Part shown: positions 5,931 to 63,611 of the stretch, one piece after another
Layout: the number at the start of each line of letters is the position of its first letter
Numbering within the stretch: the stretch's first letter is position 1
NCBI GenBank assembly: GCA_028023455.1
Contig: JAQFVV010000010.1
Coordinates: 7,316,001-7,380,000 of the forward strand
Direction of reading: 5' to 3'
Origin: Epiperipatus broadwayi
Lineage: Eukaryota > Animalia > Onychophora
Length of the DNA: 64,000 nucleotides
Made by a program: the position numbers and the translations under genes
Notes under the pieces: generated by a model
Database searches by the model: none
Seen by the model: the letters and a program-made list of their open reading frames with translations, nothing else
What the model was told of the DNA's origin: nothing

Positions 5931-6090
5931 CAGAAGCAAAACTCTTCATGCAGTAACCTCACTGATGAAAGCCACAAGTTAGAAACTAGTCTGAGAATAG
6001 TGGATGAGTAGGCACTAGATAGGGATTTTGTGCACAAGCCTAGCATCCAGTAATTACTCTAGCTTGTACTGAGTGGTGCTACTGTATGGA
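5931..6090 (+). mobile_element. Hammerhead-bearing short repeat, family B (truncated, with an inverted copy of its 3' tail at the 5' end)
   Basis: Homologous to 37316-37612 and 38637-38900 (cctcactgatga...gaaactagtctg...gatgagtaggcactagatagggatttt...ctactgtatgga). 5936-5955 is the reverse complement of the family tail tactgtatggagagttttgc (18/20). Confidence 0.7.
5957..5996 (+). ncRNA. Degenerate minimal type-I hammerhead ribozyme
   Basis: CCTCA CTGATGA AAGC CACAA GTTA GAAAC TA GTC TGAGA: core intact, stem II imperfect. Confidence 0.55.
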
Positions 6091-6124
6091 TTTTATTTAA
6101 TAGGCTACCCATTGTAGTGCTGAA

Positions 6125-9100
6125 GTGGCTGATTTGCTCTGTAAGATAAGTTCAAGTTTTATATATTTTTAATAACATCTGGATAAAAATTTAGGTTGCT
6201 GGAGACTTTGAGAGTGAATGAGAAAAGAGAATTGAAGTGCAAGACATAGATTTAATTAGATTTGGAAAAATTGAGAAAAATATTGCTAACATTTGGAAAG
6301 TGATTTCATACACCATTTTAACTATATAAAAAAAATTGTTTGTATGTGTGTGTGTTTATTGCAAGGAGGCTTTAAAACTAAGGCATACATAAGATTAGTT
6401 GGATTTTAGGTTTGCTATTAAATTTTTTCCCCAATTTAAGTGATTTATTTGAGAAAGAGAGTAATGTTTGAGGTGTAAGTTTAAGGGAACATTTGTTTTT
6501 CGGTTGCCATTTTCTTAAAAAGTTTTTTTTTCCTTTTGTATAAAGAGGTTTGAAGAGTGGTAGAAAAATCATAAATTTAAATGTAGACTAAATAAATTGA
6601 AAAGTGAGGAAAAAAGGATTGCACTTGCATCCCACAATGTATGTATGATGATCAGAAGGAAATTAGGCATGCTTTGGTAGTGTGTATAATATGTGATAAG
6701 GGTTTCCATTTGAAATATTTAAATAAGACTAGGAAAGATGTAAAAGGTGTATGGTTGTGTGGATCATACACAAATGTGATAAAAGAGGTGAAAAAATGTT
6801 TTTTAATGTAGATAATATAAAGAGAAAGTCAGGAGAAATGGAGAAAATGTAGATAAAAATAATAGAATGGAGTATATATTTAGTAGAATGGCAAGAGATA
6901 TCAATGATAAAATAAGTCGTACAATGGAGATAATTAAGCAAAGAATAAGCAAGATTAAATGAAGAGGTAAAGGATGTAGAAGTAAAATTAAAAGTGTTAG
7001 ACATGAAGTGTAAGCAGATCAAGAAATTAATGTGTAGAAACAATGAAGAAGTAGATAAGGTACTTCAGAAGATGGATGAGAATATTATGGATGAAGTAGG
7101 GAAAGTAAATTATGAAACAGTCTTGATAGGGGACTCACTAATTAGAGAATGTGGAGATGTAATTGCAATGGAAAGTAGAAATAGATATATAAGAGTATGT
7201 TTTCCTGGAGCTAGAAGTAGGGTTGTTATAGATAATGTAAAAAAACAGAGGAGTAGAGATATTTATGTTATGGTAGGGACAAATAATTTGTCAGAGCCAT
7301 TGGAGAGAGTAATGGATGAGTACAAAGAATTGATTAGTAGTTTCACTAAAGTTAAAAGAAGAGTAGGAGTAGAAGAATTACTATTAAGATTCAACAATAG
7401 GTATATGTTAAATAGAGAATGTTCTATAAATAAGAGATTGAAAAAATTATGTGACAGAAATGTTATGTTTGTGGATGTGTGGGAATTTTTTTATTAGTAA
7501 GAGGGAGTTATACAATAAAGATGGATTGCCCTTAGCAAGTCAAGGAAGTGAAGCATTAGGGGGTTTGATTTATGAAAAATATTATAGTTCAGGAAACTCG
7601 TAGAGGGGGGGGGTTTAAATTACAGTATTATCAAAAAAAGGTTAAGAATGGGTGGAATGTAAGAAATAAACAAAGGGTAGCTGATTCAGATATAAATATA
7701 GATGTAGAGAGGAAATGGATCTGTAAAACTAGTGACAAACAAACTAATTACAAATGTAATAGAGAAGGAAGAGTCAAAAGAATTTATAAAAAGGTGGTAA
7801 GAAATATTGGATATTTGAATATGCAAGGTGGTAAGAGATCAGAAAAGTGGTTGGAATTAAACAAAGCAGTTAAAAACAAAGAGCTTGAGGTAATAGCAGT
7901 AGTGGAAACACATCTAAGAGAAGATGAACATACCCTGGAAGATTTGGTATGGCAGGGTATAAATAAAAAAGAAAAAGAAAAAAGGGTGGTGGTATAGGAG
8001 TAATGTCAAAAAAATATTTAAATACTGTAAAGTATTGCGAATATTTGTGATTTGAGATAAGGTTTATGAAGACAAGAATGGATAATGATTATAGGGTATA
8101 TGGTGACTGGAGATGACTCAAATTATAATGGAGTGGAACAGTAGCATATATGAATGACTAGTTAAGGCTATATAGAGTTTCAAAAAAATGGGGAAGAAAA
8201 TAATGGCTATAGAGGATATGAATGGGCATATTGAAAAAATTGATGATGTGGATAACAAAAATGGAGAGCTTTTGAAAATTTTTTGTCAAAGAATGAATTT
8301 GAGCATTGAGAAGAAAATTAAAGCATTTGATAATGAAGAAAGAGTATGTAATAGTGATGATAATTTCTTAATAATAGAAATGGTTAGTAATGTGATGGAC
8401 AATAATAATAAAAGTAGAAAAGATAATGAAAGATGTGGATAGAGAATGAATGATAAGAATAAGTTAGAAGTATATAAAATAAAACTAGCATGAATGTAAG
8501 AATTGCTGTGATGAAGTAGAAAAAAATGGCAAATATGGTTTTAGATAAAAATATTCAGAAGAATAAAAGTAATAGAAAAGTGGGAATTAGTAAAAGTATA
8601 AAAGAGAGGAATAAAGTATGCTGAGAATATAAATGTGCTAATAAAAACAAGGAAAGTAAAAAAATATTAATATTTAATGGGAAAACTATTTAAATAAAAA
8701 GAAGTTGTCTAAAATAGATAATTATAGAGAATGAAATTAAACAGTAAATTAATGGAGGATATTAATAAAAGGGGAAGAGATAGGTGTAAAAAATTTTGTA
8801 AATATATTAAAAGAATGAATGTAGGAGAGAGAGAAATAATATTACTAAATGATGAGGAAAAAGAGTGTAGCTCTAGAGAAGAATTAGAGACAAACTTAAA
8901 TAAGTATGTAATGTATATAGAAAAGATGTTAAATGTAAAGGATAGAGTGATAACAAACATAGAAGCACGTAGTAGTGGAAATATTAATTTTGCACAAAAT
9001 AAACTAGATGATGCAGGAAGATGTTGAAAAGTGGAAAGGCAAGAGATTTAGATGGATGGCCAGCAGAGATGGTGATGGATTTGGGAAATAGGGCAAAATT

Positions 9101-10098
9101 AAATCTATTATCATGTTTTAATAAGATGGCACAGAAGACAGAATTTCCAGATAGCTGGAATAATACCAAGAGTGATTTTATTATTTAAAGGAAAGGGTAA
9201 AAAAATCATAGAAATATAAAGAATTATAGACCAGTAGTGATAATGTCAGTGTTATATAAAGTTTTTGCATATATGATGACTGGAAGGGTGGAAAAATGGA
9301 TGAAAAAAAAATAATATAGTGGGAGAAATGCAAGTAGATTTTAGAATGGATAGGCATATGGGATAGAGTTTATTTGTAGTCATACAACTTATAGATATGA
9401 GTAAGAATATAAGTAAACAGTTATATATGGTCTTTATAGATATGAAGAAGGCATATGATAGAGGAAATAGAAAAGATTATGGATAAGTTGAATAAATTTG
9501 GGAATGAATGGAGGTTTAGTGGATCTTATTAAGAGATTGTATGAAAATAATTGCTATATGTATCAATTAGGAAATATAGAATCAATTAGAGTCAAAAATG
9601 GGATAGGACTAATGCAAGGATGCCCTATGTCACCTATTTTGTTTTTATTATATTTTTGAGAGAAATGGGGAGAACAATAGGAAGACTAGAAAGAGGAATA
9701 GAGATATCACTAATAGATGACAAGGAAATGTATACATTGTCAAATCTTTATTTGCTGATGATATCTTCTTGTGCAAAGAAATTAGGGAAGATATGGAAGT
9801 TATGCATAAGGGTGGTTAAAGAGATGGGGATTAAATTTAATGAAGAAGAATCAAAAGTAATGATGGGGAAAGAGAATAGAAAAATTTTTTATTGAGAGAT
9901 ATAAACGTTAAATGCAGGGAATAGTAATAACTATTTGGGAATTGTCTTAAGTAATCAGAGAAATTGCTTGGCTGAATGAGAGAAAAAATTAATTAATGAA
10001 GGAAAGAAAAGAAAGAAACTGATAAAGAAATTAACAGTGTTTTCATACAATAAATATGATGGAGCAAGAATTGTATGAAAGGGAGTGGCAATAGTCAA
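6125..10098 (+). mobile_element. Degenerate LINE (RTE-X/CR1-like): ORF1 PHD finger + coiled coil + SGNH esterase; ORF2 APE + RT; 3'-truncated
   Basis: CIICDKGFHLKY...WLCGS (PHD remnant, ~6680-6775); TVLIGDSLIR and MVGTNNL (SGNH blocks, ORF 6994-7497); IGYLNMQGG, VETHLRE, EDMNGH (APE); FPDSWNNTRVILLFKGKG, YRPVVIMSVLYKVF, FIDMKKAYD, GLMQGCPMSPILF, FADDIF (RT, frameshifted). Collinear with the copy at 22050-27965. Confidence 0.85.
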
Positions 10099-17942: not shown

Positions 17943-19540
17943 ATTTAATAATTAATATTACATTTTATAATAAACTTATATGTATATAACGTCTCTTCTT
18001 AAAGACGGATTGAGATATCTATAGAATAAAAATAATCTAACGATAATACTTTATTTTCAGCATAGTTTATTTTATTTTAAATTAGAGCTACAATATAAGT
18101 ATCTAATAAGATACTATTCAGAAGCATATCAAGCCATGTGTTATGAATCTAAAGCCTTTTTATTTTTCTCCTTGCAATCAAATTTGTTGTACAGATGGTA
18201 AATTTTTGCTATTTAAAAAAAACATTTCATTACTTTACTTGCTTCAAATTTTATATTATTTTCCACTGTGCCAGTTACTACTACGAGAAATATCCCATTA
18301 CGAACTTCACATTTTCATTAACTCCTAAATCATCTCACAAAACATTATTCTTTCTTATAATTGGATCATACAAAAATGCTTCTCTAAGACATTTTTCCTA
18401 CCTGATTTTTAAATACATTTTTGCAATTCTGTGCTAATGATAAACATATATCCATATGTACATCAGCCATCCAATTGAACATATAAAGTAAATGAACTAG
18501 ACAAAATTTCCTAAAAGATGTTTGTAGTAGGCTTGGGAAATGGGAGGGGAAATGCAGTATTTCAAAAAGAAAAGTTTGCTGCTGAGGAAATTAAGAAAAG
18601 CATTGTAAAATATCAAATAAATAGAATATTGGATCAGCAAGGTAACCATATTTGTGTTTCATATAGTAATTTGAATAATCATCGTAGAACTCAGTACTAG
18701 TGTATTATTTGTTTCTTTTGGAGTTGAATATTTAAAAATTATAGAAAAAAGGTAGCATTCGAATATCCCTTGTTAATTTCCATCTACTTTTGTCAAGGTT
18801 GTATCACATGATCATCACATACTGTATGGAAAGTTTTGCTTTGTTTTGTCATGATTGTATCTGAGTGCAAAGAATTATTTACATGTCATCAGTTACATAT
18901 TCTTGTCATTGTTTTTAATACTTTATTGAAATAATAGAATATTTAATTTTGCATATATTATGTATATGATTGAATGAAATAAGGGTAAAAGTTATCTTCT
19001 CTTAATTTACTAATAAATATTACTAACACTTATAACTAAATTAACAGTTATTCTTTTTCTTATCTCTCTGGTCAGGGACAGTGAAGATTGTATGTTTATG
19101 CAATCCCATTTCTATCTTTAATTATATATGTAATAATTGTGATTCTTTTTTTTTTCGTTGTTTACTAATTTTTTATTCAGTCTTTATCTCGTTTCTTTTT
19201 TCTTCTGGAATTAGAAAAACCGTACTTGCCAATCTTTTTTTTTCTTTCTCAAGAAAATTGATATCATAGTAAACTATTTCTTTTATCACAATAGAATGTT
19301 TATTGAAGGCAATCTTTTCCTACTCATTTTTTTTCTGTTTTTGCCAGTCATTCACTGATAGCCTCTTTTGATTGGCTAATTATGATCTATCTAGTTTGCA
19401 AGATTCTGGTGTATATATTTTTTAACAAAGCTAATATACATGAAAAACAAATTTTGACTAGGAACATACTTGTTCACCATCTCTATGAACACTTACTATA
19501 GTGCTTAATAAATCTCTATTTTGTATCATTCTATCCAATA

Positions 19541-19580
19541 TCCCAGACTAGTTTCAAGCGTATGGCTCCCTTCAATGAGA
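19541..19580 (-). ncRNA. Degenerate minimal hammerhead ribozyme
   Basis: Minus strand TCTCA TTGAAGG GAGC CATAC GCTT GAAAC TA GTC TGGGA: stems I-III can form; core C3 and A9 mutated. Confidence 0.55.
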
Positions 19581-19994
19581 AGTTTTACATCTTGAAACAA
19601 TTCATCTGGACCTTTAGAATCTAATACAACCTTTTTCCAGCTGCTATCATTTACCTTTTTTATACTATTAAGCTATTGACCCAAACTGAAAAACATATAA
19701 ATATTTTCAGTCTAAGCTAACTGACCCATATACTCATGAAACCAGTAGTTTCTATATGTTATAGTGTCCTTAGTTTTTTTAATAACAATAGATACTTCTA
19801 TCTTGTCAAGAGTTTGTTATAAGCTTGACATTAGCCTGGGGATATTGGATAAAACAGCACAGAATAGATCATATGGTTATTAAAAACTAGGATGCCATAA
19901 TATACAGAAACTGGTATGATGTAAATGATAACAGCTGAAATGAAAGCACATTAGAGCCTAAATATCTATGTGCACTGTTCCAAGATTCAAACCT

Positions 19995-20034
19995 CATCAT
20001 TGATAAAAGCCATAAGCTTGAAATTAGTCTGGGG
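19995..20034 (+). ncRNA. Degenerate minimal hammerhead ribozyme
   Basis: CATCA TTGATAA AAGC CATAA GCTT GAAAT TA GTC TGGGG: perfect stem II, core mutated. Confidence 0.45.
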
Positions 20035-21039
20035 ATATTGAATACAATAACACAGGATAGAGATTTATTTAGCATTATCATCTGGCATCTATTATTACTT
20101 ACTAAAGCTACTGTAAAGTAAAAGAATGCTGCTAAAATAATGTGTAACCTGAAGTAAAGTGAGTCATGTGATATCTGGGCTAGAAATAATATAATCTGTA
20201 GTCTAATAAATGATTAATATACTTACCTAAAATGGATAATGTCAAAGATATTAATAGAAGATGTATAATGATATTTTAAGAACAAAATGCCTGAGATATT
20301 TATTCTTTTCTGTTGGAAACCAAACCAACAATTTTTTATTATGACTAACTACTCAATTCCCAACAAATCAATTATGTTTATATCTAAATCAATAATTTAA
20401 TGATTAAACAAAAAATACATATAAACAAAAACTTAATTAAAATCATTATTTATAATTTTAAGTACAATTATAAAAGCTGGAAGTTTTAAAAGCCGATTTT
20501 TTTTTTTACTTTTTTAAAAATCTATTTTATATTTGTACTTTTATAAAGCTATATTTCAAATAGTTTTTTTTTGAATCCCCAATCAAAAATACAAGTTAAA
20601 AATACTCTTTAATTAAAACCTCATTTAATTCCATTTCTAAAAATATTCTTTTTATTAAAATCAATATCTTATTTTAGAATAAAGCTTAAACCTAATATGG
20701 TAAAATAAATTAAGATTTTGTAAATAATCATTGATGATGAGCAAGTATTATAATTTGGCCACAGTGCTCATAGTCTTTGAATTGAGAACGTACATAAATC
20801 AATACTTGACTGAAAACATACAGAAATCAGCACTTTCACGTTTAAAATATAAATAATGAATGTTCTTTAGTTGGAAGATATAAATCTGTTCCCTGTAAAA
20901 TATTATTTTTGCATAGAAGTGATCTCTATCAATAATTTTGTTTCAGAATTTTTACATTTTATTTAGTAGAGTTTAATCACATAGTTAACTACCAAAGCTT
21001 TTATAATACTATTTATTAATTAGCACGAAATACATATAT

Positions 21040-21575: not shown

Positions 21576-22675
21576 ATAGGCTCCAGGTATAAGAGTGTGT
21601 GGTTATAGAAAATTAAATTGGGGTTATATCAGGAGTTTTACTTTGTGATGAATCTTGAAAATGAGATGTAATAATTTTGGTCGAAACCTATTATTGATGA
21701 TGATCAAGTATACACTGTCATAAACCTGCTTTTAAGTAAATCATTTAACGTACTCTTATGCATTTTAATAATGTAAAAGGCTTCATTATTGTAAGTCTGA
21801 TTTTGAGATACTTGGAATAATATTAAGGAAGTGGCAAACTATCACCATAATGAGAATGTTTTTATAGAGGTAAAGTCAAGCAGAAAACATACAATATATA
21901 TATACAAACATAAAACCAATAAGGTATCACATCAATATTGTAACATATGTTTTTCACATTACCTTCCTACAGCTGGTTTTAAAGTTAAAAATCATGACTC
22001 CAGATGGCAGTTCAGTTCCAAGAGATTTAGGCCTATGCGAATGAATAGGCATGGCTGACTTTTGCTTTGCAAGATAAGTTAGTTTTATTTATTTTAATAA
22101 CATCTAGATAAACATTTCTATTGTTGGAGAATATTTGTATAGATAGCGGATGAGAAAAGAGAGTTGAAGAGAGATAGATTTAATTGTATTTGGAAAGATT
22201 GAGAAAAAATATTGTTAACATTTGGAAAGCGATTTGAGATGCAGGCATTTTAACCATTTTTAAAAAATATTTGTGTTTATTACAATGAGTCCTTCAAAAC
22301 TAAGGCACACATAAGATTATTTGGATTTTAGAAAGTTTGCTAATAAAATTTTTTTAATTTAAGTGATTGATTCATTTTGAGAAAGAGGGGTAACATTGAA
22401 GTGTGAGTTTTAGGGGCGCATGTGTTTCTTGATCTTCATTATATATATATAAAAAAAACATTTTCTGTATAAAAAAAGTCTGGAAAGTGATAGAAAAATC
22501 ATAAATTTAAATATAAAGCAAGGGAATTGGAAAAAGAAGGAAATATGGACTGCATATTATAATGTAAAATTAAGAGCTTGCTAATAAACTCTAAACAAGT
22601 TTTTAAAAAATTTTTTAAATGATAAATGCTACAAGAGAAGGCATTCAAATAATCTTTATCTAGGATTGTCCCCAT

Positions 22676-22714
22676 CCCCAGACTAGTTTCGAGCTATGGC
22701 TCTCTTCAGTGAGG
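22676..22714 (-). ncRNA. Intact minimal type-I hammerhead ribozyme
   Basis: Minus strand CCTCA CTGAAGA GAGC CATA GCTC GAAAC TA GTC TGGGG: all conserved core nucleotides, 5-bp stem I, 4-bp stem II, palindromic ACTAGT stem III, GUC cleavage triplet. Confidence 0.85.
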
Positions 22715-23052
22715 AGCTAGGACACCAGATTCAAAAAACCAACTCAAATTAAGCATTTATCTAATATTAGTTAACTTTCAATAAGAATATCTGAAACCTT
22801 TAGACATCTACATGTTTTTAGTCAGATCTTCAAATGGAAAAATCATATGAGTCTGAACTTTCAGATACTCCATATATTAATAGGCTTAGCCATTTAATTT
22901 AGCCAAAGCCCCCAATAGCAAAATAATAATAGTAATAATAGAAAGTCAGATATCACATGTAGATGTCTAAAGGTTTCATATCTTCTTATTGAAAGCTAAC
23001 TATTAGATAAATGCTTAGCTTTAGATGATTTTTTGAATCTGGTGTCCTAGCA

Positions 23053-23091
23053 CCTCACTGAAGAGACCCATAGGTCAAAACCAGTCTGGGG
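23053..23091 (+). ncRNA. Hammerhead ribozyme copy (G12 mutated)
   Basis: CCTCA CTGAAGA GACC CATA GGTC AAAAC CA GTC TGGGG: stem II carries a compensatory pair relative to 22676-22714; GAAA became AAAA at a CpG. Confidence 0.75.
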
Positions 23092-23467
23092 ATAGGGACA
23101 ATCCTAGATAAAGATGATGTGAATGCCTTCTCTTGTAGTAGCATTTATCATAACAAATAAAAAAAATATTGTTTAGAGGTTATTAGCATGCTCTTAATTT
23201 TACATATTTGTAAATGCAAGCTATATATGTCATGTGACATCTGACTTTCTATTACTATTCTGCCATTGGGGCTTTGGTTAAATTAAATGGATAAGCTTAT
23301 TAATATCTGGAGTATCTGAATTAAGTTCAGGCTCATATGATTTTTTCAGTTGAAGAGCTGACTTTAAAGACATGTAGATGCCTAAAGATTTCAGATCATC
23401 TTATTGAAAGTTAATTATTAGATGAATGCTTAACTTTAGTTGGTTTTTTGAATCTGGTGTCCTAGCT

Positions 23468-23506
23468 CCTCACTGAAGAAATCCATAGCTTGAAACTGGT
23501 CTGGTG
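23468..23506 (+). ncRNA. Hammerhead ribozyme copy (core intact, stems partly decayed)
   Basis: CCTCA CTGAAGA AATC CATA GCTT GAAAC TG GTC TGGTG. Confidence 0.7.
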
Positions 23507-26500
23507 ACAATCCTAGATAAAGATAATTTGAATGCCTTCTCTTGTAGTAGCATTTATCATAAAAAATTTTAAAAGCTTGTTTAGAGCTTATTAGCATTTG
23601 TAAATGCAAGCTATATATGTCATGTGACATCTGACTTTTTAATTATTAATATCACAATATATGTAGTGGCAGTCAGATGGAAACTAGCCATCCTTTGGTA
23701 GCGTACAGTATGTTTAAGATTTTCCAACTAAAGTTCTTAAATAAGAGTAGAAAGGATATAAAAGGTGTATGATTGTGTAGATCATGTATAAATGTGATAA
23801 AAGAGGTGAAAAAATGTTTTTTTTAAGTGTAGATAGTTTAAAGAAGAGATATTGAGGAAAATGTAAATAAGGACAATAGAATGGAGTATATGTTTAGTAG
23901 AGTGACAAGAGATATAGATGACAAAATAAGTAGTGCAGTGGGAATAGTTAGCCAAATAATAAAGAAGATAGAGGAATAGGTAAAGGATGTAGAAGTTAAA
24001 AGCAAGTAAGTAGATCAAGGAAATGATAAGAAAGAAATAGATAATGAAGTTCAGAAGGTTGAAGAAAATAATAAAATAGAAGAAATAATCTATGAGATTG
24101 TCTTGATAGGGGACTCATGTGTTAGAGGATATGGAGATATGATTGCAAGGGAAAATAGAAATAGATATGTAATAGTATGTTTGCCTGGAACTAGAATTAG
24201 GAATGTTACAGACAAGATAAATAAACAGGGAAACAGAAAGGTTTGTATTATGGAGGAGACAAATAATTTGTCAGAGCTACTGGAGAGAGTAATGGATGAG
24301 ACAAAGAATTGATTAGTTAGTTTGAATAAGGTTAAAGGAAGAGTAGGAATAGTTGAATTACTACCAAGATTCAACAATAGATAGTTTACATAGGGCATGT
24401 TCTATAAATGAGAGCTTGGAAAAGTTAGACATGTTATGTTTGAGGATGTGTGGAATTTTTTTATTTGTAAGAGGGAGTTGTAAAGATAAATTGCATTTAG
24501 CAAAACAAGGAAGTGAAGCATTAGATGGCTTGATTTATGAAAAATAGATTTCGGGAAACTTATAAAAGGAGATAGGATTTAAATTATAGTATTATCAAAA
24601 AGGTTAAGAATGGATGAGATGTAAGAATTAAACACAAGATAGTTTACCTAGATGTAAATGTGGAGAGGGAATGGGTCAGTAAAACTAATGATAAATAAAT
24701 TAAGAGAAGAATCAAAAGAATTTGTAAAAGGGCAGAAAGAAAGAAAGAAATTGTAAAAATTGGATACTTGAAATGCAATGTGGTAGGAGACCAGAAAAGT
24801 GGTTGGAATTAAACAAAGCAGTTAAAAATGAAGGGCTTGAGGTATTAGCAATAGTGGAAACACATCTAAGAAAAGAACCTAAAATGAAAAACTTGGTATG
24901 GCAAGATATAAATAGAAAAGAAAAAAGGAGTGGTGGTATAGGAGTAAGGTCAAAAAAGTAATTAAATGCTATAAAGTATCAAGAACATTTATGGTTTGAG
25001 ATAAAGCTAGTAAGACAATAATGGGTGATGTAATGAGTATGCTCACTGAAGATAGGGAAACTATAATGGAGTGGAACAATAACACATATGAATGACTATT
25101 TAAGTATATGCAGAGTTTCAAAAAAAGGGGAAAGAAAATTATGGTTATAGGGGATATGAATGGGCATATTGAAGAAATTGACAATGTGGATAACAAGAAT
25201 GGGCAGCTTCTGAAATTTTTTTTCATAGAGAGCAAATTTAAATATTGGAAATTTATCAAATATTTATAAGGGACAATACACATGGTCTAGAAATAATATA
25301 TTCACACAATAGATTATGTAGCAGTAGATAAAGAGGGAATGAATAAAGTACGAAAAATTAAAGTTTTTGATAATGTAGAGAAAGTATGTAATAGTGATCA
25401 TAATTTCTTTATAATAGACACAGTTAGTAATGTGATGGAAAATAATAATCAAAGATTAGTGAAAAATGTGGATGGAGAGTGAATAATAAGAATAAGTTAG
25501 AAAAATTTAAAATAAAAGTAGAAGTTGTGGAAGAGTTTGTTGGGAATGAATATAAAAATTGGTGTGATGAAGTAGAAAAAGTAGCAAATTGAGTTTTAGG
25601 TGAGAGTATTCAGAAAATTAAAATAGAAAAGTGAGAATTAATAAGAGTCAGGGAAAGACATACAGAGAATATAAAGGTACTATTAAAAACAAAGAAAGTA
25701 AAAAGATGTTAATATAAAATGAGAAAACTATTTAAATAAAAAGTTATCTAAAATAGATAGTTATACAGAATGAAATTAAATAGTAAATTATTGAAAGATA
25801 TTAATAAAAGTAGAAGAGATGGAAGTAAAAAATTTTGAAAATATATTAAAAAAAGAAATGTAGGGGAGAAATAGTATTACTAAATGATGAGGAAAAAAAG
25901 TCTAGTTCTAGAGAAGAATTAGAGTCAATATTAAATAAGTATATAGTAGACATAGAAAAGATGTTAGATGTGAAGGACAAAATGATAATAATCATTAAAA
26001 GCACATAGTAAAGAAAATATTAGATTTACAGAAAATGAATTGAATGAGGCAGAGGAAGAAGTTGAAAAATGGGAAGGCAAGAGGTTTAAATGGATAGACA
26101 GCAGAGATAGTGATGAATTTGGGAAATAGGGCAAAATTAAATCTATTGTCATGCTTTAATAAAATGGCACAGAAGACAGAATTTCCAGATATCTGGAATA
26201 ATAGTTATTATTTAAAGGAAAGGGTAAAAAATCATAGAAAGATAAACATTTATAAACCGGTCGTGGTAATGACAGTATTGTATAAAGTTGTGCAAATATG
26301 GTGGCTGGAAAGGTGGAAAAATGAAAGAAAATAATAGAGTGGGAGAAATTCAAGGAAGTTTTAGAATGGATAGACATATAGAAGATAGCTTATTTGTAGT
26401 CAAATAATTTATAGAAATGAGTAGTAATACAGATAGACAATTTTATATGGCCTTTATAGCTATAGAGAAGGCATATAAGTGAATAGAAATAGATTATCGA

Positions 26501-28039
26501 TAAGTTTAGTAAATTTGGGAAAGAATGGGGCTTTGGTGGATCTTATTAAGAGATTGTATGAAAACAATTATTATACATATCAACTAGGAAATATACTAAG
26601 TTAAGAGTTAAAAATGAAATGGCACTAAGGCAAGTATGCCCTATGTCACCTATTTTGTTTTTGTTGTATTTGAGAGAGCAATAAAAAGATTAAAAAGAGG
26701 GGTAGAGATACCATTAGTAGATACATGGGAGTAAATACATTATCAAGTCTTTTATTTGCTGATATTTTCTTATGCACAGAAAGTAGGGAAGATATGGAAG
26801 TTATGCTGAAGACATGCACAAAGGTGGGTAAAATAATGGGGATTAAATTTAGTGAAGAAAAATCAAAAGTAATGAAGATGAATGCTGGGGAAAGAGAATA
26901 GAAAGAATTTTTATTGGAGGATATAAAGTTAAATGTAGTGAATAAGTATAACTATTTGGGAATCATCTTAACTAATCAGAGAAATAGCTTAGATGAATGC
27001 GAGAAAAATTTGATAAATGAAGCAAAGAAATGAAAGGAACTGATAAAGAAATTAAGTGTTTTCATATAATAAATATGTTGTATCAAGAATTGTATGGGAA
27101 TGGCAATAGTGGGTTTAATCTATCTTAAAAGAGTACTAAGTAGGAAGACATGCATTAGATGCAGATGTGTGGACAGCAAAGGAGACAATTCAAGGAGGTA
27201 TGGGATGGTTACGTTTTTATATGAGATGCAAAAAATAAAATGAAAATGTTTGATAGATTGTAATTTATGGATAGTAAGGGAATAGCTAACATCATATTTA
27301 ATTGAGTTATGAATAAAAGGCATACAACAAAATGGGTGAGAAAGTTAGTAAGATATGCAAATTTGGATAAAGACTTTGTCAGTATATTTGTACAAAAAGT
27401 GGGATGATTGTGTTAGGAGGATTTCTGAGTGTTATAGTGGCAAAGACTAGGATAGAAGAATAGCTATATTAATAAAAAAATAGGGAGATGGAGAACTAGT
27501 ATGGAGAGTAAAAAGAGCTTAAATATAAATAAACCCAATATTGGATGCAAAATAATAGCAGGGAAAATAGTTTATTATTTAAGGCTTGAACAGGATCGCT
27601 AGCGACATGGGACTATACACATAAATGGAGAAATGCAGGTGATTTAGTCTGCAGGTTATGTAAGGAAGGCATAGAAAATATTAGGCATTTGCTAATAGAA
27701 TGTGAATGCTTATAAGCAAAAAGGGTACAAATAATGAAGTTGTGGGAGAATAAATATAGACCAAATGATTATGCAGAAAATGAATTATCGGTCTATGCTG
27801 GGATTGAAAAAATATAAGGGGAATGTAGAAACAAAGGCCATGGAGTGGACAAAAGTGGTGTGGAAATGGGATAGAGAAGAATATGTAAATATGGAGAATG
27901 GAAAATAAGATGGCTAACAATTTTTTCTTGGACATATTTGCTGAGAGATTCCCGACTTCAATAAAAAAGTAGTCATCATATCACATATTCAGTTTCTGAT
28001 TCCCATTTAGACAAACTAAAACTTATAAAAAAATGAAAA

Positions 28040-37315: not shown

Positions 37316-37612
37316 TTAAACAAGGCAAATGCTATTGAGCTTAGAGTGAAAATATTAGTGTTTTCAATTTCATTCTCATAGTTTTGTAGTTTAAGTACAG
37401 ATAAAAGGTGGCTGCTGGAGGGTTGCATTAGATCCTAAGATGGTGCAGTGCTCTCAGATTCAAGGTTCCTCACTGACGAAGGCCACAAGACAGAAACTAG
37501 TCTGGGGATATTGGATGAGTAGGCACTAGATAGGGATTTTATGCACAAGCCTTCTGGCATCCATTGATTACTCTGGTTGGCACTACTGTATGGAGAGTTT
37601 TGCCTTGTTTAA
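37316..37612 (+). mobile_element. Family B hammerhead-bearing element with 14-bp inverted ends
   Basis: Highly similar to 38637-38900; ttaaacaaggcaaa (37316-37329) is the exact reverse complement of tttgccttgtttaa (37598-37612 region). Confidence 0.75.
37468..37507 (+). ncRNA. Minimal hammerhead ribozyme, stem II imperfect
   Basis: CCTCA CTGACGA AGGC CACAA GACA GAAAC TA GTC TGGGG: core, stem I and stem III intact. Confidence 0.6.
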
Positions 37613-38636
37613 TCATTAGCAATAATGAAAAACATTTTTTTCATTATTTCTTTTAAATCTTGTTCCAAATTTCTCTTAAATCTTTTTTATCCCAAATCAG
37701 TAAAAATATTGCTTAGTACTTCCTCCATAAAATTTACAAGTAAAAGTCTTTTCTTTCTATTGACAAACATGAACGAAATCTTTAACATGAAGAAAAAAAA
37801 AAAACCCCAAAAGTACATTTTAAATTATTTATCATCAACTGCTACAATTTTATCAAACTATAATCACGCTATATTTGCTAATTCTGCATCTCACTATGAA
37901 TTCCTTAAACTCGAATAATTTATATATTCTGTATATTTTTGAAACATAACTGCCATTTATGATTTTAGCGTTTATTAATTCAATGCTATGAGTGAAGATT
38001 GTTGTCACTATATTTTGAATATTTATTTTACATCTAAGGTCTACTAAATAACTTTTGTAATATATTTATTTGTTTTTAGAAAGCATTTAAATGTTTTCTT
38101 AAAATTCTATGATTACTTTTGAAATCTTCATTCTTTAAATTATTTTTTTGAACACTTTCAAGGAATATTTTAATATTTAAAAATCATATTTTTTTCTTAT
38201 TTTAAAATATTAATACTTTTGTCATCAAAAAAGCAACAATGTATTTTCTTTTTATAGCAATCCTTGGATTAAAAAATATTTTTTATAATTTATTATAGCA
38301 ATATAAATAATGAAAAAGAATTACATTGAATGTTTTTTTTCATCTCAAGTTTTTACCTAAAATTTTCTTATAGAAGTAAACGTAAATAAATAAAAACAAA
38401 TAACTGCATTTGGTCGTTCTGCTGCTGTGAAAATAATACATTTATTCAGTAATTCGGGAAATTATTTTCAAAATGATTCTAATCTTCTAATATGGAATTT
38501 CCAAAATCTACAAGTGACAATCATTAGTATTTTGTATACTGGAAAAAAAAGTTTAAACACATCATAATTTGAAACATACTCCAATTAATAATTCAATAAA
38601 CATAACATGACCACCACTTTTTATGCTTGGGTATAA

Positions 38637-38900
38637 CTGTTTTAAAACAGTTTAAGACATAGTTTTGTAGTTAAATGGAGATAAAAGGTGGCTGCTGGAG
38701 GGTTGCATTAGATCCTAAGATCTAGGTGCAGTGCTCTCAGATCCAAGGCTCCTCACTGATGAAGGCCACAAGCCAGAAACTAGACTGGGGATATTGGATG
38801 AGTAGGCATTAGATGGGGATTTTATGCACAAACCTTCTGGCATCCATTGATTAGCTTGCTGGGCGTGGCAATATGTATAGTGAGTTTTGCCTGTTTTAAA
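38637..38900 (+). mobile_element. Family B hammerhead-bearing element
   Basis: gataaaaggtggctgctggagggttgcattagatcctaagat...cttctggcatccattgatta shared with 37316-37612; ctgttttaaa at both 38637 and 38891 (possible target-site duplication). Confidence 0.75.
38751..38790 (+). ncRNA. Hammerhead ribozyme copy with mutated cleavage triplet
   Basis: CCTCA CTGATGA AGGC CACAA GCCA GAAAC TA GAC TGGGG: GTC changed to GAC. Confidence 0.55.
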
Positions 38901-62720: not shown

Positions 62721-63611
62721 TTAAGAAGCTTTGTGCCTTCCTCCACATATTCCACAGGCCACTCCACATTTATGACAAGCTCTAAATGGGAGATAGCACC
62801 ACAAACAAGGAACCAAAAATGATAGGATGGTTAAACCTACCCACCTTTTACAACAAGTTTCATCTGAAGGATCACATGAACAAGGGTGAGCGTAGTCTCC
62901 TTCTGAATCAGACATACAATGATATAGCATACAACTCGCACAAAACATGCAGCTGGCTTTATCTATGCACTGACGAACCTTATCAGGAGCATATTCACAC
63001 ACACCACGCTCATTTTCATCATGGCTAAACATTTCATGGCAGTACCGACAGCGAGACCTTTCGCTCAATAAATGCTTGTGTTTATCACGTTTTCTATCTT
63101 TTTTTTTACTTTTAGTTGGTAAAAGGGGTGGTGGCTGCCTTGCAATAGCTTCGAAATTGTGTTTTTTAAGACCACTAATGGAGTCTCTCTTTTCTGATTT
63201 TAAATCCAAATTTGGGTAAGAATATTCATGTGTGAGAGGACGATCCTTAGCAAATTGTACATATGAATAAGAATCTGACTGAATAATTTCTATTTTATCA
63301 TTATCAACTGATCCTTGTTCTTTCTTTTCTTCATGTTTGACCCATACGTCTTCATTGGGAACCGACTTCTGATCACCATTGCTGTTATGGCTGCTTCCAT
63401 TGCTCCCATTGTTATTGGAACCGTTACCGTGAGATTTGGGTGGGCGAGGAATAAAATGCATTCGATGAAGATGGTGATGATTAGCATGAGGATGAGTGTA
63501 TGATGATGAATAAGGCTCTACTGAGAGACTGGGAGTACTAGAAGGTGGTCGAGCGCTGCTGGAACTAGATGAGGAACCAGAATTTTCTCGTTCCAAAGGA
63601 AGCTCCAAAGT
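62721..63611 (-). CDS. Spred: Terminal coding exon of Spred (Sprouty-related EVH1 domain protein), containing the cysteine-rich SPR domain
   Basis: Intact ORF ending ERSRCRYCHEMFSHDENERGVCEYAPD...SCMFCASCMLYHCMSDSEGDYAHPCSCD...RWVGLTILSFLVPCLWCYLPFRACHKCGVACGICGGRHKAS*, the Spred-type SPR domain. Polypyrimidine tract and AG acceptor (ttttctctttttag|ACTTTG) put the exon start at 63611; the EVH1 exons must lie beyond the window. Confidence 0.95.
   Translation of the reverse strand, partial: TLELPLERENSGSSSSSSSARPPSSTPSLSVEPYSSSYTHPHANHHHLHRMHFIPRPPKSHGNGSNNNGSNGSSHNSNGDQKSVPNEDVWVKHEEKKEQGSVDNDKIEIIQSDSYSYVQFAKDRPLTHEYSYPNLDLKSEKRDSISGLKKHNFEAIARQPPPLLPTKSKKKDRKRDKHKHLLSERSRCRYCHEMFSHDENERGVCEYAPDKVRQCIDKASCMFCASCMLYHCMSDSEGDYAHPCSCDPSDETCCKRWVGLTILSFLVPCLWCYLPFRACHKCGVACGICGGRHKAS

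Follow-up and report, generated by a model that had tools for sequence, protein, structure and literature searches.

Within a 64,000-nt stretch of the Epiperipatus broadwayi genome (assembly GCA_028023455.1, contig JAQFVV010000010.1, positions 7,316,001 to 7,380,000 of the forward strand; hereafter the window), a short cluster of direct and inverted repeats carrying hammerhead ribozyme motifs interrupts what appears to be a long interspersed nuclear element (LINE), which raises the question of what kind of element this is and how it came to be there. Animal retrozymes consist of 150-450-bp AT-rich tandem units with type-I hammerheads, and retrozyme-like repeats occur 'from molluscs to arthropods', with crustaceans and insects named (PMC7229834). 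They have been proposed to be non-autonomous derivatives of Penelope-like elements (PLEs) (bioRxiv 10.64898/2026.07.22.740005; PMC7229834), with an origin argued to lie in the pseudo-long terminal repeats (pLTRs) of the latter (bioRxiv 10.64898/2026.07.22.740005). An earlier reading of the window, made from the letters alone (the original prediction), took the locus for a genomic copy of a retrozyme or of a non-autonomous Penelope-like family, and its main points are borne out by a tandem AT-rich unit, one hammerhead per unit, a roughly 10^4-fold excess of sequence depth and the geometry of the insertion. Here, we argue that the locus is probably the old product of an abundant, non-autonomous and non-coding retroelement of the animal retrozyme type that lacks long terminal repeats (non-LTR), inserted in the style of Penelope.

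The element is built from a repeat unit of approximately 415 nt, defined by repeat finding, BLAST and alignment, of which 1.66 units stand in tandem on the plus strand and about 0.95 unit on the minus strand (Table 1). The direct copies 22955-23092 and 23370-23507 are spaced by 415 nt, the inverted arms 22562-22766 and 23001-23205 are 84% complementary over 205 nt, and the three copies share a pairwise identity of 86.5-89.4%. The minus arm is circularly permuted and crosses the unit boundary (22959->22562), and the polarity defined by the ribozymes turns the 3' ends of both arms outward. The units have a GC content of 30-32.5% and 0-1 CpG against 6-11 expected. With no open reading frame (ORF) of at least 80 aa, they agree with the predicted non-coding tandem repeat, and the proposed inverted, near-complete monomer joined by acatg microhomology was recovered as well, since ACATG is common to both arms. 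Tandem Repeats Finder reported nothing at the locus, as expected with just 1.66 diverged copies, and BLAST of the unit against the window gave no further copies of the family. A short interspersed nuclear element (SINE) derived from a tRNA was ruled out on the ground that ARAGORN found no tRNA-like part in the unit.

Each copy carries a hammerhead motif, and all three motifs lie exactly where the original prediction had placed them, with the C of the two plus-strand GUC triplets at 23086 and 23501, 415 nt apart, and every core nucleotide of the minus motif present. Read from 22714 to 22676, the latter is 5'-CCUCA-CUGAAGA-GAGC(CAUA)GCUC-GAAAC-UA-GUC-UGGGG, in which C3-A9, G12-A14, A15.1/U16.1, C17, G10.1-C11.1 and the GUC triplet make up a complete core, flanked by a helix I of 6 bp (UCCUCA/UGGGGA), a helix II of 4 bp and a helix III of 2 bp with a 2-nt loop. 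This loop is CA in the first plus copy, and the second plus copy has a U/C mismatch in helix II and one mismatch in helix I. The helix III palindrome reads ACUAGU, ACCAGU and ACUGGU in the three copies against a family consensus of ACCGGU, and the local versions (UA, CA, UG) derive, to judge from these letters, from CpG decay of a single palindrome. In canonical metazoan type-I hammerheads, helix I has 6 bp, helix II 4 bp and helix III 1-2 bp closed by a small palindromic loop, and such ribozymes are inefficient alone but active as dimers in tandem transcripts; the minimal hammerhead ribozyme (min-HHR) of Penelope, in contrast, combines a helix II of 7-8 bp with a 4-5-bp helix I and lacks helix III (PMC4209133). 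By these published definitions the motif is of the canonical metazoan type-I layout, not a Penelope min-HHR, and the 'minimal type-I hammerhead' of the original prediction thus stands as to type I but not as to minimal in the Penelope sense, helix I being extendable to approximately 18 bp. Two active ribozymes on the same strand are no longer present, so the locus would now be unable to release a monomer, and the insertion is best described as an inert, decayed fossil copy.

Could the hammerhead-like strings be chance matches in AT-rich repeat DNA, as Rfam scores below the gathering threshold might suggest? The hammerhead pattern occurs four times in the window, where 0.34 matches are expected, and four or more were reached in 0 of 100 shuffles. 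Further, eight hammerheads from three or four families, all in the window, could be aligned (Table 1), and in this small sample of related sequences 87.5% of the cells hold a formed hammerhead pair, compared with 20-42% when the partners are slid. Three of the four helix II pairs show two-sided changes (G-C/A-U, A-U/G-C and G-C/C-G), and the covariation score was reached by just 8 of 500 shuffles, so that the alignment backs the hammerhead structure, short of proof. Given these compensatory changes, the complete core of the minus copy and the position of the motif in the most abundant block of its family, a chance origin is scarcely credible.

Folding was applied to the natural sequences only. 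For the minus copy with its flanks, helix II was recovered and helix I was prolonged to about 18 bp with internal loops, and the minimum free energy (MFE) structure was shifted in register beside the core, as expected since the energy model is ignorant of the core. The RNA of the intact minus arm folds better than shuffled sequences (z = -3.48), the second plus copy reached z = -0.85 without recovery of the hammerhead helices, and RNAcofold of two motif copies returned the trivial full duplex, which is uninformative on a dimeric ribozyme.

The two additional groups of motifs in the window are observations in their own right. Family B, at 37316-38900 and 5957-6060, has the same helix I and helix III as the 415-nt family, a helix II and loop of AGGC-CACAA-GCCA, and A/A at 10.1/11.1 in all three copies; its direct copies of approximately 240 nt (37377-37612 and 38658-38899), 1,283 nt apart, may represent either a pLTR-like pair or a unit of greater length. 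Hammerheads of a third and fourth family, both decayed, are found at 19498-20110, where a minus arm (19498-19654) faces plus copies at 19819-19868 and 20012-20061 that are 193 nt apart, in the same inverted-plus-tandem layout as at 22555-23652.

The original prediction had proposed that the monomer be sought in the genome, and the family proved to be abundant there: when contigs of one DNA run from the same genome were mapped on the minus arm at a likeness of at least 80%, 8,879 contigs matched. Summed word depth, 41-56 on the left flank, increases to about 10^4 at 22562 and reaches 4-8.6 x 10^5 over 22626-22753, a plateau that coincides with the extended hammerhead domain. In the stretches 22562-22609 and 22770-22849 the depth is for the most part lower by one to two orders of magnitude, with a moderate island at 22786-22817 of 1.1-1.4 x 10^5, and a second block at 22850-22961 reaches 0.9-4.9 x 10^5. 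The copy number of the family is approximately 10^4, as an order of magnitude only, depth not being equal to copy number, and the hammerhead domain would appear to be its best-kept or most shared block. The family-majority helix III is ACCGGU (22684 T>C in 91% and 22685 A>G in 89% of the depth), G12>A (22690 C>T) is found in 21% of the family depth, and 22693 G>C (position 11.3) stands at 47% with its partner 22700 not among the variable positions listed. The second abundant block lies on the minus arm away from the ribozyme and directly 3' of the tail region on the unit, folds as a hairpin (GGGGGCUUUGGCUAAAUUAAAUGGCUAAGCC) and could be a recognition or promoter element.

Comparison with the family also gives a relative chronology. 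At 22725/22726, 22662 and 22654 the three copies agree in letters that are in the minority in the family, and these serve as subfamily markers and fit a single source RNA or array. Where the minus arm departs from the family majority, the plus copies mostly have the majority letter, which marks these departures as private changes that followed the insertion. The 11-14% divergence between the copies, together with the near-total loss of CpG, points to an old event. In other genomic contigs, head-to-tail joints (22959>22562 and 22909>22632) and several opposite-strand joints at varied positions were found, and tandem and head-to-head arrangements thus recur elsewhere in the genome.

Contigs of the family are also present in RNA libraries, with 111 from the same species and 244 and 265 from two related species, some of the latter at a likeness of at least 99%. 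One RNA-library contig joins 22937 to 22562 head-to-tail via 37 nt equivalent to the part of the unit left out between these two positions; such a joint occurs in tandem DNA too, and is therefore no proof of circles. Flank depth was zero in two of the RNA-library runs.

The boundaries of the insertion follow from its host. Alignment of the flanks to a second copy of the host repeat in the window defines an insertion of 1,098 bp, and these bounds rest on the paralog (6126-8262) being continuous at the insertion point, where it represents a paralogous empty site. The paralog contains a weak GDSL-esterase-like ORF at 6994-7497, approximately 360 nt downstream of the equivalent site (Pfam E 0.005, below the cut-off), the atlas neighbours of which are GDSL families. 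A GDSL-esterase-like ORF is known in ORF1 of some CR1/L2-type LINEs. Judging from this weak ORF and from its repeatedness, the host is plausibly a LINE interrupted in its 5' part, as the original prediction had it. The LINE-like copies (6000-10000 and 24000-28000) have a very strong positive GC skew of 0.49-0.61, and a reverse transcriptase (RT) domain was not recovered from their short ORFs.

This anatomy bears on two explanations that dispense with reverse transcription. A hammerhead-bearing satellite, as newt satellite 2 or the cave-cricket pDo500, moved by duplication and inversion at the DNA level, would account for the tandem arrangement, the very high copy number and the head-to-tail DNA joints. 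Against this, the piece is short and dispersed and lies within a different repeat, the paralog of which offers a clean empty site; the arms, circularly permuted, meet at a microhomology and have their 3' ends facing outward; and the other family at 19498-20110 has the same geometry, all of which makes a satellite origin improbable. Even less probable is a fold-back transposon, or one like a miniature inverted-repeat transposable element, with the motif in its inverted arms by accident: such an element would have arms like the 205-nt, 84% complementary ones seen here, but the arms, of 0.95 and 1.66 units, are of unequal length as well as circularly permuted, one of them is tandemly repeated, the ends are not mutual inverted copies and are without a convincing target-site duplication, and no transposase was found nearby.

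Table 1 Features of the hammerhead-bearing insertion, its host repeat and related motifs, given as positions in the window.
Feature	Position	Strand	Evidence or remark
Whole insertion	22555..23652	.	Flanks align to uninterrupted paralogous repeat; DNA-contig depth jump at ~22562
Left flank, host LINE-like repeat	22052..22554	+	Aligns to 6126-6623, 73% identity
Right flank, host LINE-like repeat	23653..25200	+	Aligns to 6633-8262, 76.6% identity
Inverted arm, ~0.95 unit	22562..22959	-	Sense is the minus strand, 3' end at left flank; fold z = -3.48
ACATG overlap, 5' ends of arms head-to-head	22955..22959	.	Aligns as first bases of minus arm and of plus unit 1
Unit 1, 415 nt	22955..23369	+	Repeat finding, BLAST, alignment
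Unit 2, partial, ~0.66 unit	23370..23652	+	Ends at right flank
3' extension of right arm, ~46-57 nt, resembling Penelope 'tail'	23596..23652	+	Alignment; bounds +/- ~10 nt
Hammerhead, complete catalytic core	22676..22714	-	Predicted cut after C17 at 22681; RF00163 24.4 bits, E 0.0035 (1.4-kb search)
Hammerhead, G12>A (inactivating position)	23053..23091	+	RF00163 21.4 bits; helix II GACC/GGUC, compensated relative to minus copy
Hammerhead, core intact, helix I and II mismatches	23468..23506	+	6 nt deleted immediately 3' of helix I
Extended hammerhead domain, helix I ~18 bp and helix II	22655..22735	-	MFE -26.4 kcal/mol, z = -2.33
Related motifs in other repeat families	5955-5998, 37466-37509, 38749-38792, 19993-20036, 19582-19539	last minus-oriented	Alignment

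Insertions of PLEs are 5'-truncated partial tandems whose 5' end is often joined by a further copy, inverted and likewise 5'-truncated, and they carry a 30-40-bp tail at one end only (PMC8557442 section 6), which has been traced to two internal start sites of reverse transcription (PMC11167929). At the present locus the left arm stops at a point of the unit equivalent to ~23205, the right arm at one equivalent to ~23251-23262. Given this geometry, in which the right arm runs approximately 46-57 nt further along the unit than the left one, we favour integration by a Penelope-type enzyme using a multimeric or circular template and two-sided priming, in agreement with the proposal that retrozymes are non-autonomous PLE derivatives.

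The same likeness raises the question of whether an independent family is needed at all, as the three pieces might be 5'-truncated pLTR copies of an autonomous PLE. Heavy 5'-truncation, partial tandems, inverted arms and pLTR hammerheads are all features of PLE insertions (PMC8557442, PMC4209133), and the locus has the same geometry. Yet the unit returns to its own start after 415 nt, no ORF separates the copies, unit-length head-to-tail joints recur in other genomic contigs, and the hammerhead is canonical type-I rather than a min-HHR with its long helix II and short helix I (PMC4209133). We consider this alternative unlikely, and it is the least improbable of those discussed here.

Under the preferred reading of a non-autonomous retrozyme, tandem copies would be transcribed as multimers in which helix III is too short to hold alone, and the hammerheads would pair two by two via the ACCGGU palindrome. 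Paired hammerheads would then cut after GUC and release unit-length RNA, which could be circularised by the host tRNA ligase, as in other animals. A Penelope-like reverse transcriptase/endonuclease would copy the multimeric or circular template from the nicked target, beginning on both target sides and yielding complementary DNAs of 0.95 and 1.66 units that would be joined at the ACATG microhomology. The 3' ends, about 50 nt apart on the unit, would be akin to the two start sites behind the one-sided Penelope tail. For the 415-nt family, self-cleavage, circles, Penelope mobilisation and two-sided priming are steps that we infer.

Several observations weigh against this reading. The RF00163 matches lie below the gathering score of 34, nothing passes the gathering threshold in the whole window, and a permissive whole-window Rfam scan kept just one hammerhead match; the shortfall arises from the shorter loop II (4 nt compared with 6 nt in the Rfam consensus) and the minimal helix III, and the single match kept makes Rfam unsuited as a census tool here. 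The plus unit from cleavage site to cleavage site is no more stable than shuffled sequences (z = -0.17). In the three local copies, conservation of the hammerhead does not exceed that of the sequence immediately flanking it, and core invariance across the family, resting on the variable positions listed, is not established. The RNA-library contigs may equally well stem from trace DNA of a 10^4-copy repeat. A Penelope RT or GIY-YIG ORF was not found in the window among ORFs of at least 85 aa, and none of the 18 window ORFs had a Pfam match to an RT, endonuclease or transposase, the weak GDSL-esterase hint being all that was obtained. The tail of ~46-57 nt is longer than the 30-40 nt of PLEs, its ends being blurred by the 11-14% divergence. 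Finally, a clear target-site duplication is absent: the first 9-mer of the insertion (TATTATAAT) and the last (TATTAATAT) match each other at 7 of 9 positions, but only 1 of 9 matches the 9 nt (CTTGCATCC) that the paralog holds between the flank-equivalent stretches, and the end 9-mers may reflect a 9-bp duplication that has degenerated, the deletion of a small part of the target or divergence of the paralog, which are indistinguishable here.

Outside the repeats, a 295-aa ORF at 62721-63608 on the minus strand contains a Sprouty domain and corresponds to the C-terminal exon of a SPRED-like gene, the best protein matches of which are from chelicerates at up to 57% identity (scorpion 57%, horseshoe crab and spiders), matches by which the host would be placed among the arthropods and probably the chelicerates; the retrozyme locus lies approximately 40 kb beyond the 3' end of this gene. 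The segment 40000-44000 has a GC content of 35-38% compared with 23-31% in the rest of the window, and its ORFs are without a Pfam match.

Taken alone, the locus is inert and adds one further example. The genome would extend retrozymes to a lineage for which we found no description, and the literature likewise gave no relevant description of hammerheads in chelicerates. The mobility of retrozymes has so far been argued from their co-occurrence with, and sequence similarity to, PLEs; in this genome, where several families are present, copies number in the thousands and empty sites can be recognised, the integration mechanism would become readable from the anatomy of the insertions (start sites, junctions and arm lengths). 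We put forward only tentatively, and with more doubt than confidence, that the retrozyme families of ~10^4 copies in this genome integrate with the full Penelope signature of two-sided priming, two alternative start sites separated by about 50 nt and arms that exceed one unit in length. If this is true, genomic insertions would directly record how Penelope enzymes reverse-transcribe hammerhead RNAs that are circular or multimeric, and such elements might also make up a substantial part of the lineage's 'unclassified' repeats.

How, then, does the element relate to known systems? Type-I hammerheads are embedded in the 300-500-nt repeats of the SINE-like Schistosoma Sm-alpha, newt satellite 2 and Dolichopoda pDo500, with 6 bp in helix I, 4 bp in helix II and a palindromic helix III that is unstable, and are putatively active as dimers. 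Compared by description and not by alignment, the hammerhead layout and dimer model of the 415-nt unit are like theirs, with the similarity confined to the ribozyme core and, unlike in these repeats, no tRNA-like or RNA polymerase III part in the unit. The locus shares with PLEs the partial tandem, the adjacent inverted copy with 5' ends facing, the one-sided 3' extension and the AT-rich target, and differs from them in having no RT/GIY-YIG ORF that we could find, a unit of 415 nt as opposed to ~3 kb, a canonical hammerhead in place of the min-HHR and an extension of ~50 nt rather than 30-40 nt. The likeness is broadest with the animal non-LTR retrozymes (PMC7229834), such as the 350-390-bp repeats of Mytilus galloprovincialis, in that the unit is a non-coding, AT-rich tandem repeat of ~400 nt with one canonical type-I hammerhead each, thousands of copies and presence in RNA libraries, and is likewise without LTR, primer-binding site or polypurine tract features (no separate look for the latter two motifs was taken here). 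It departs from them in its lineage-specific sequence, in its 4-nt loop II, in forming a short, dispersed head-to-head insertion instead of a long array, and in being known here from sequence alone. On this comparison, the 415-nt family would be a lineage-specific member of the known non-LTR retrozyme class.

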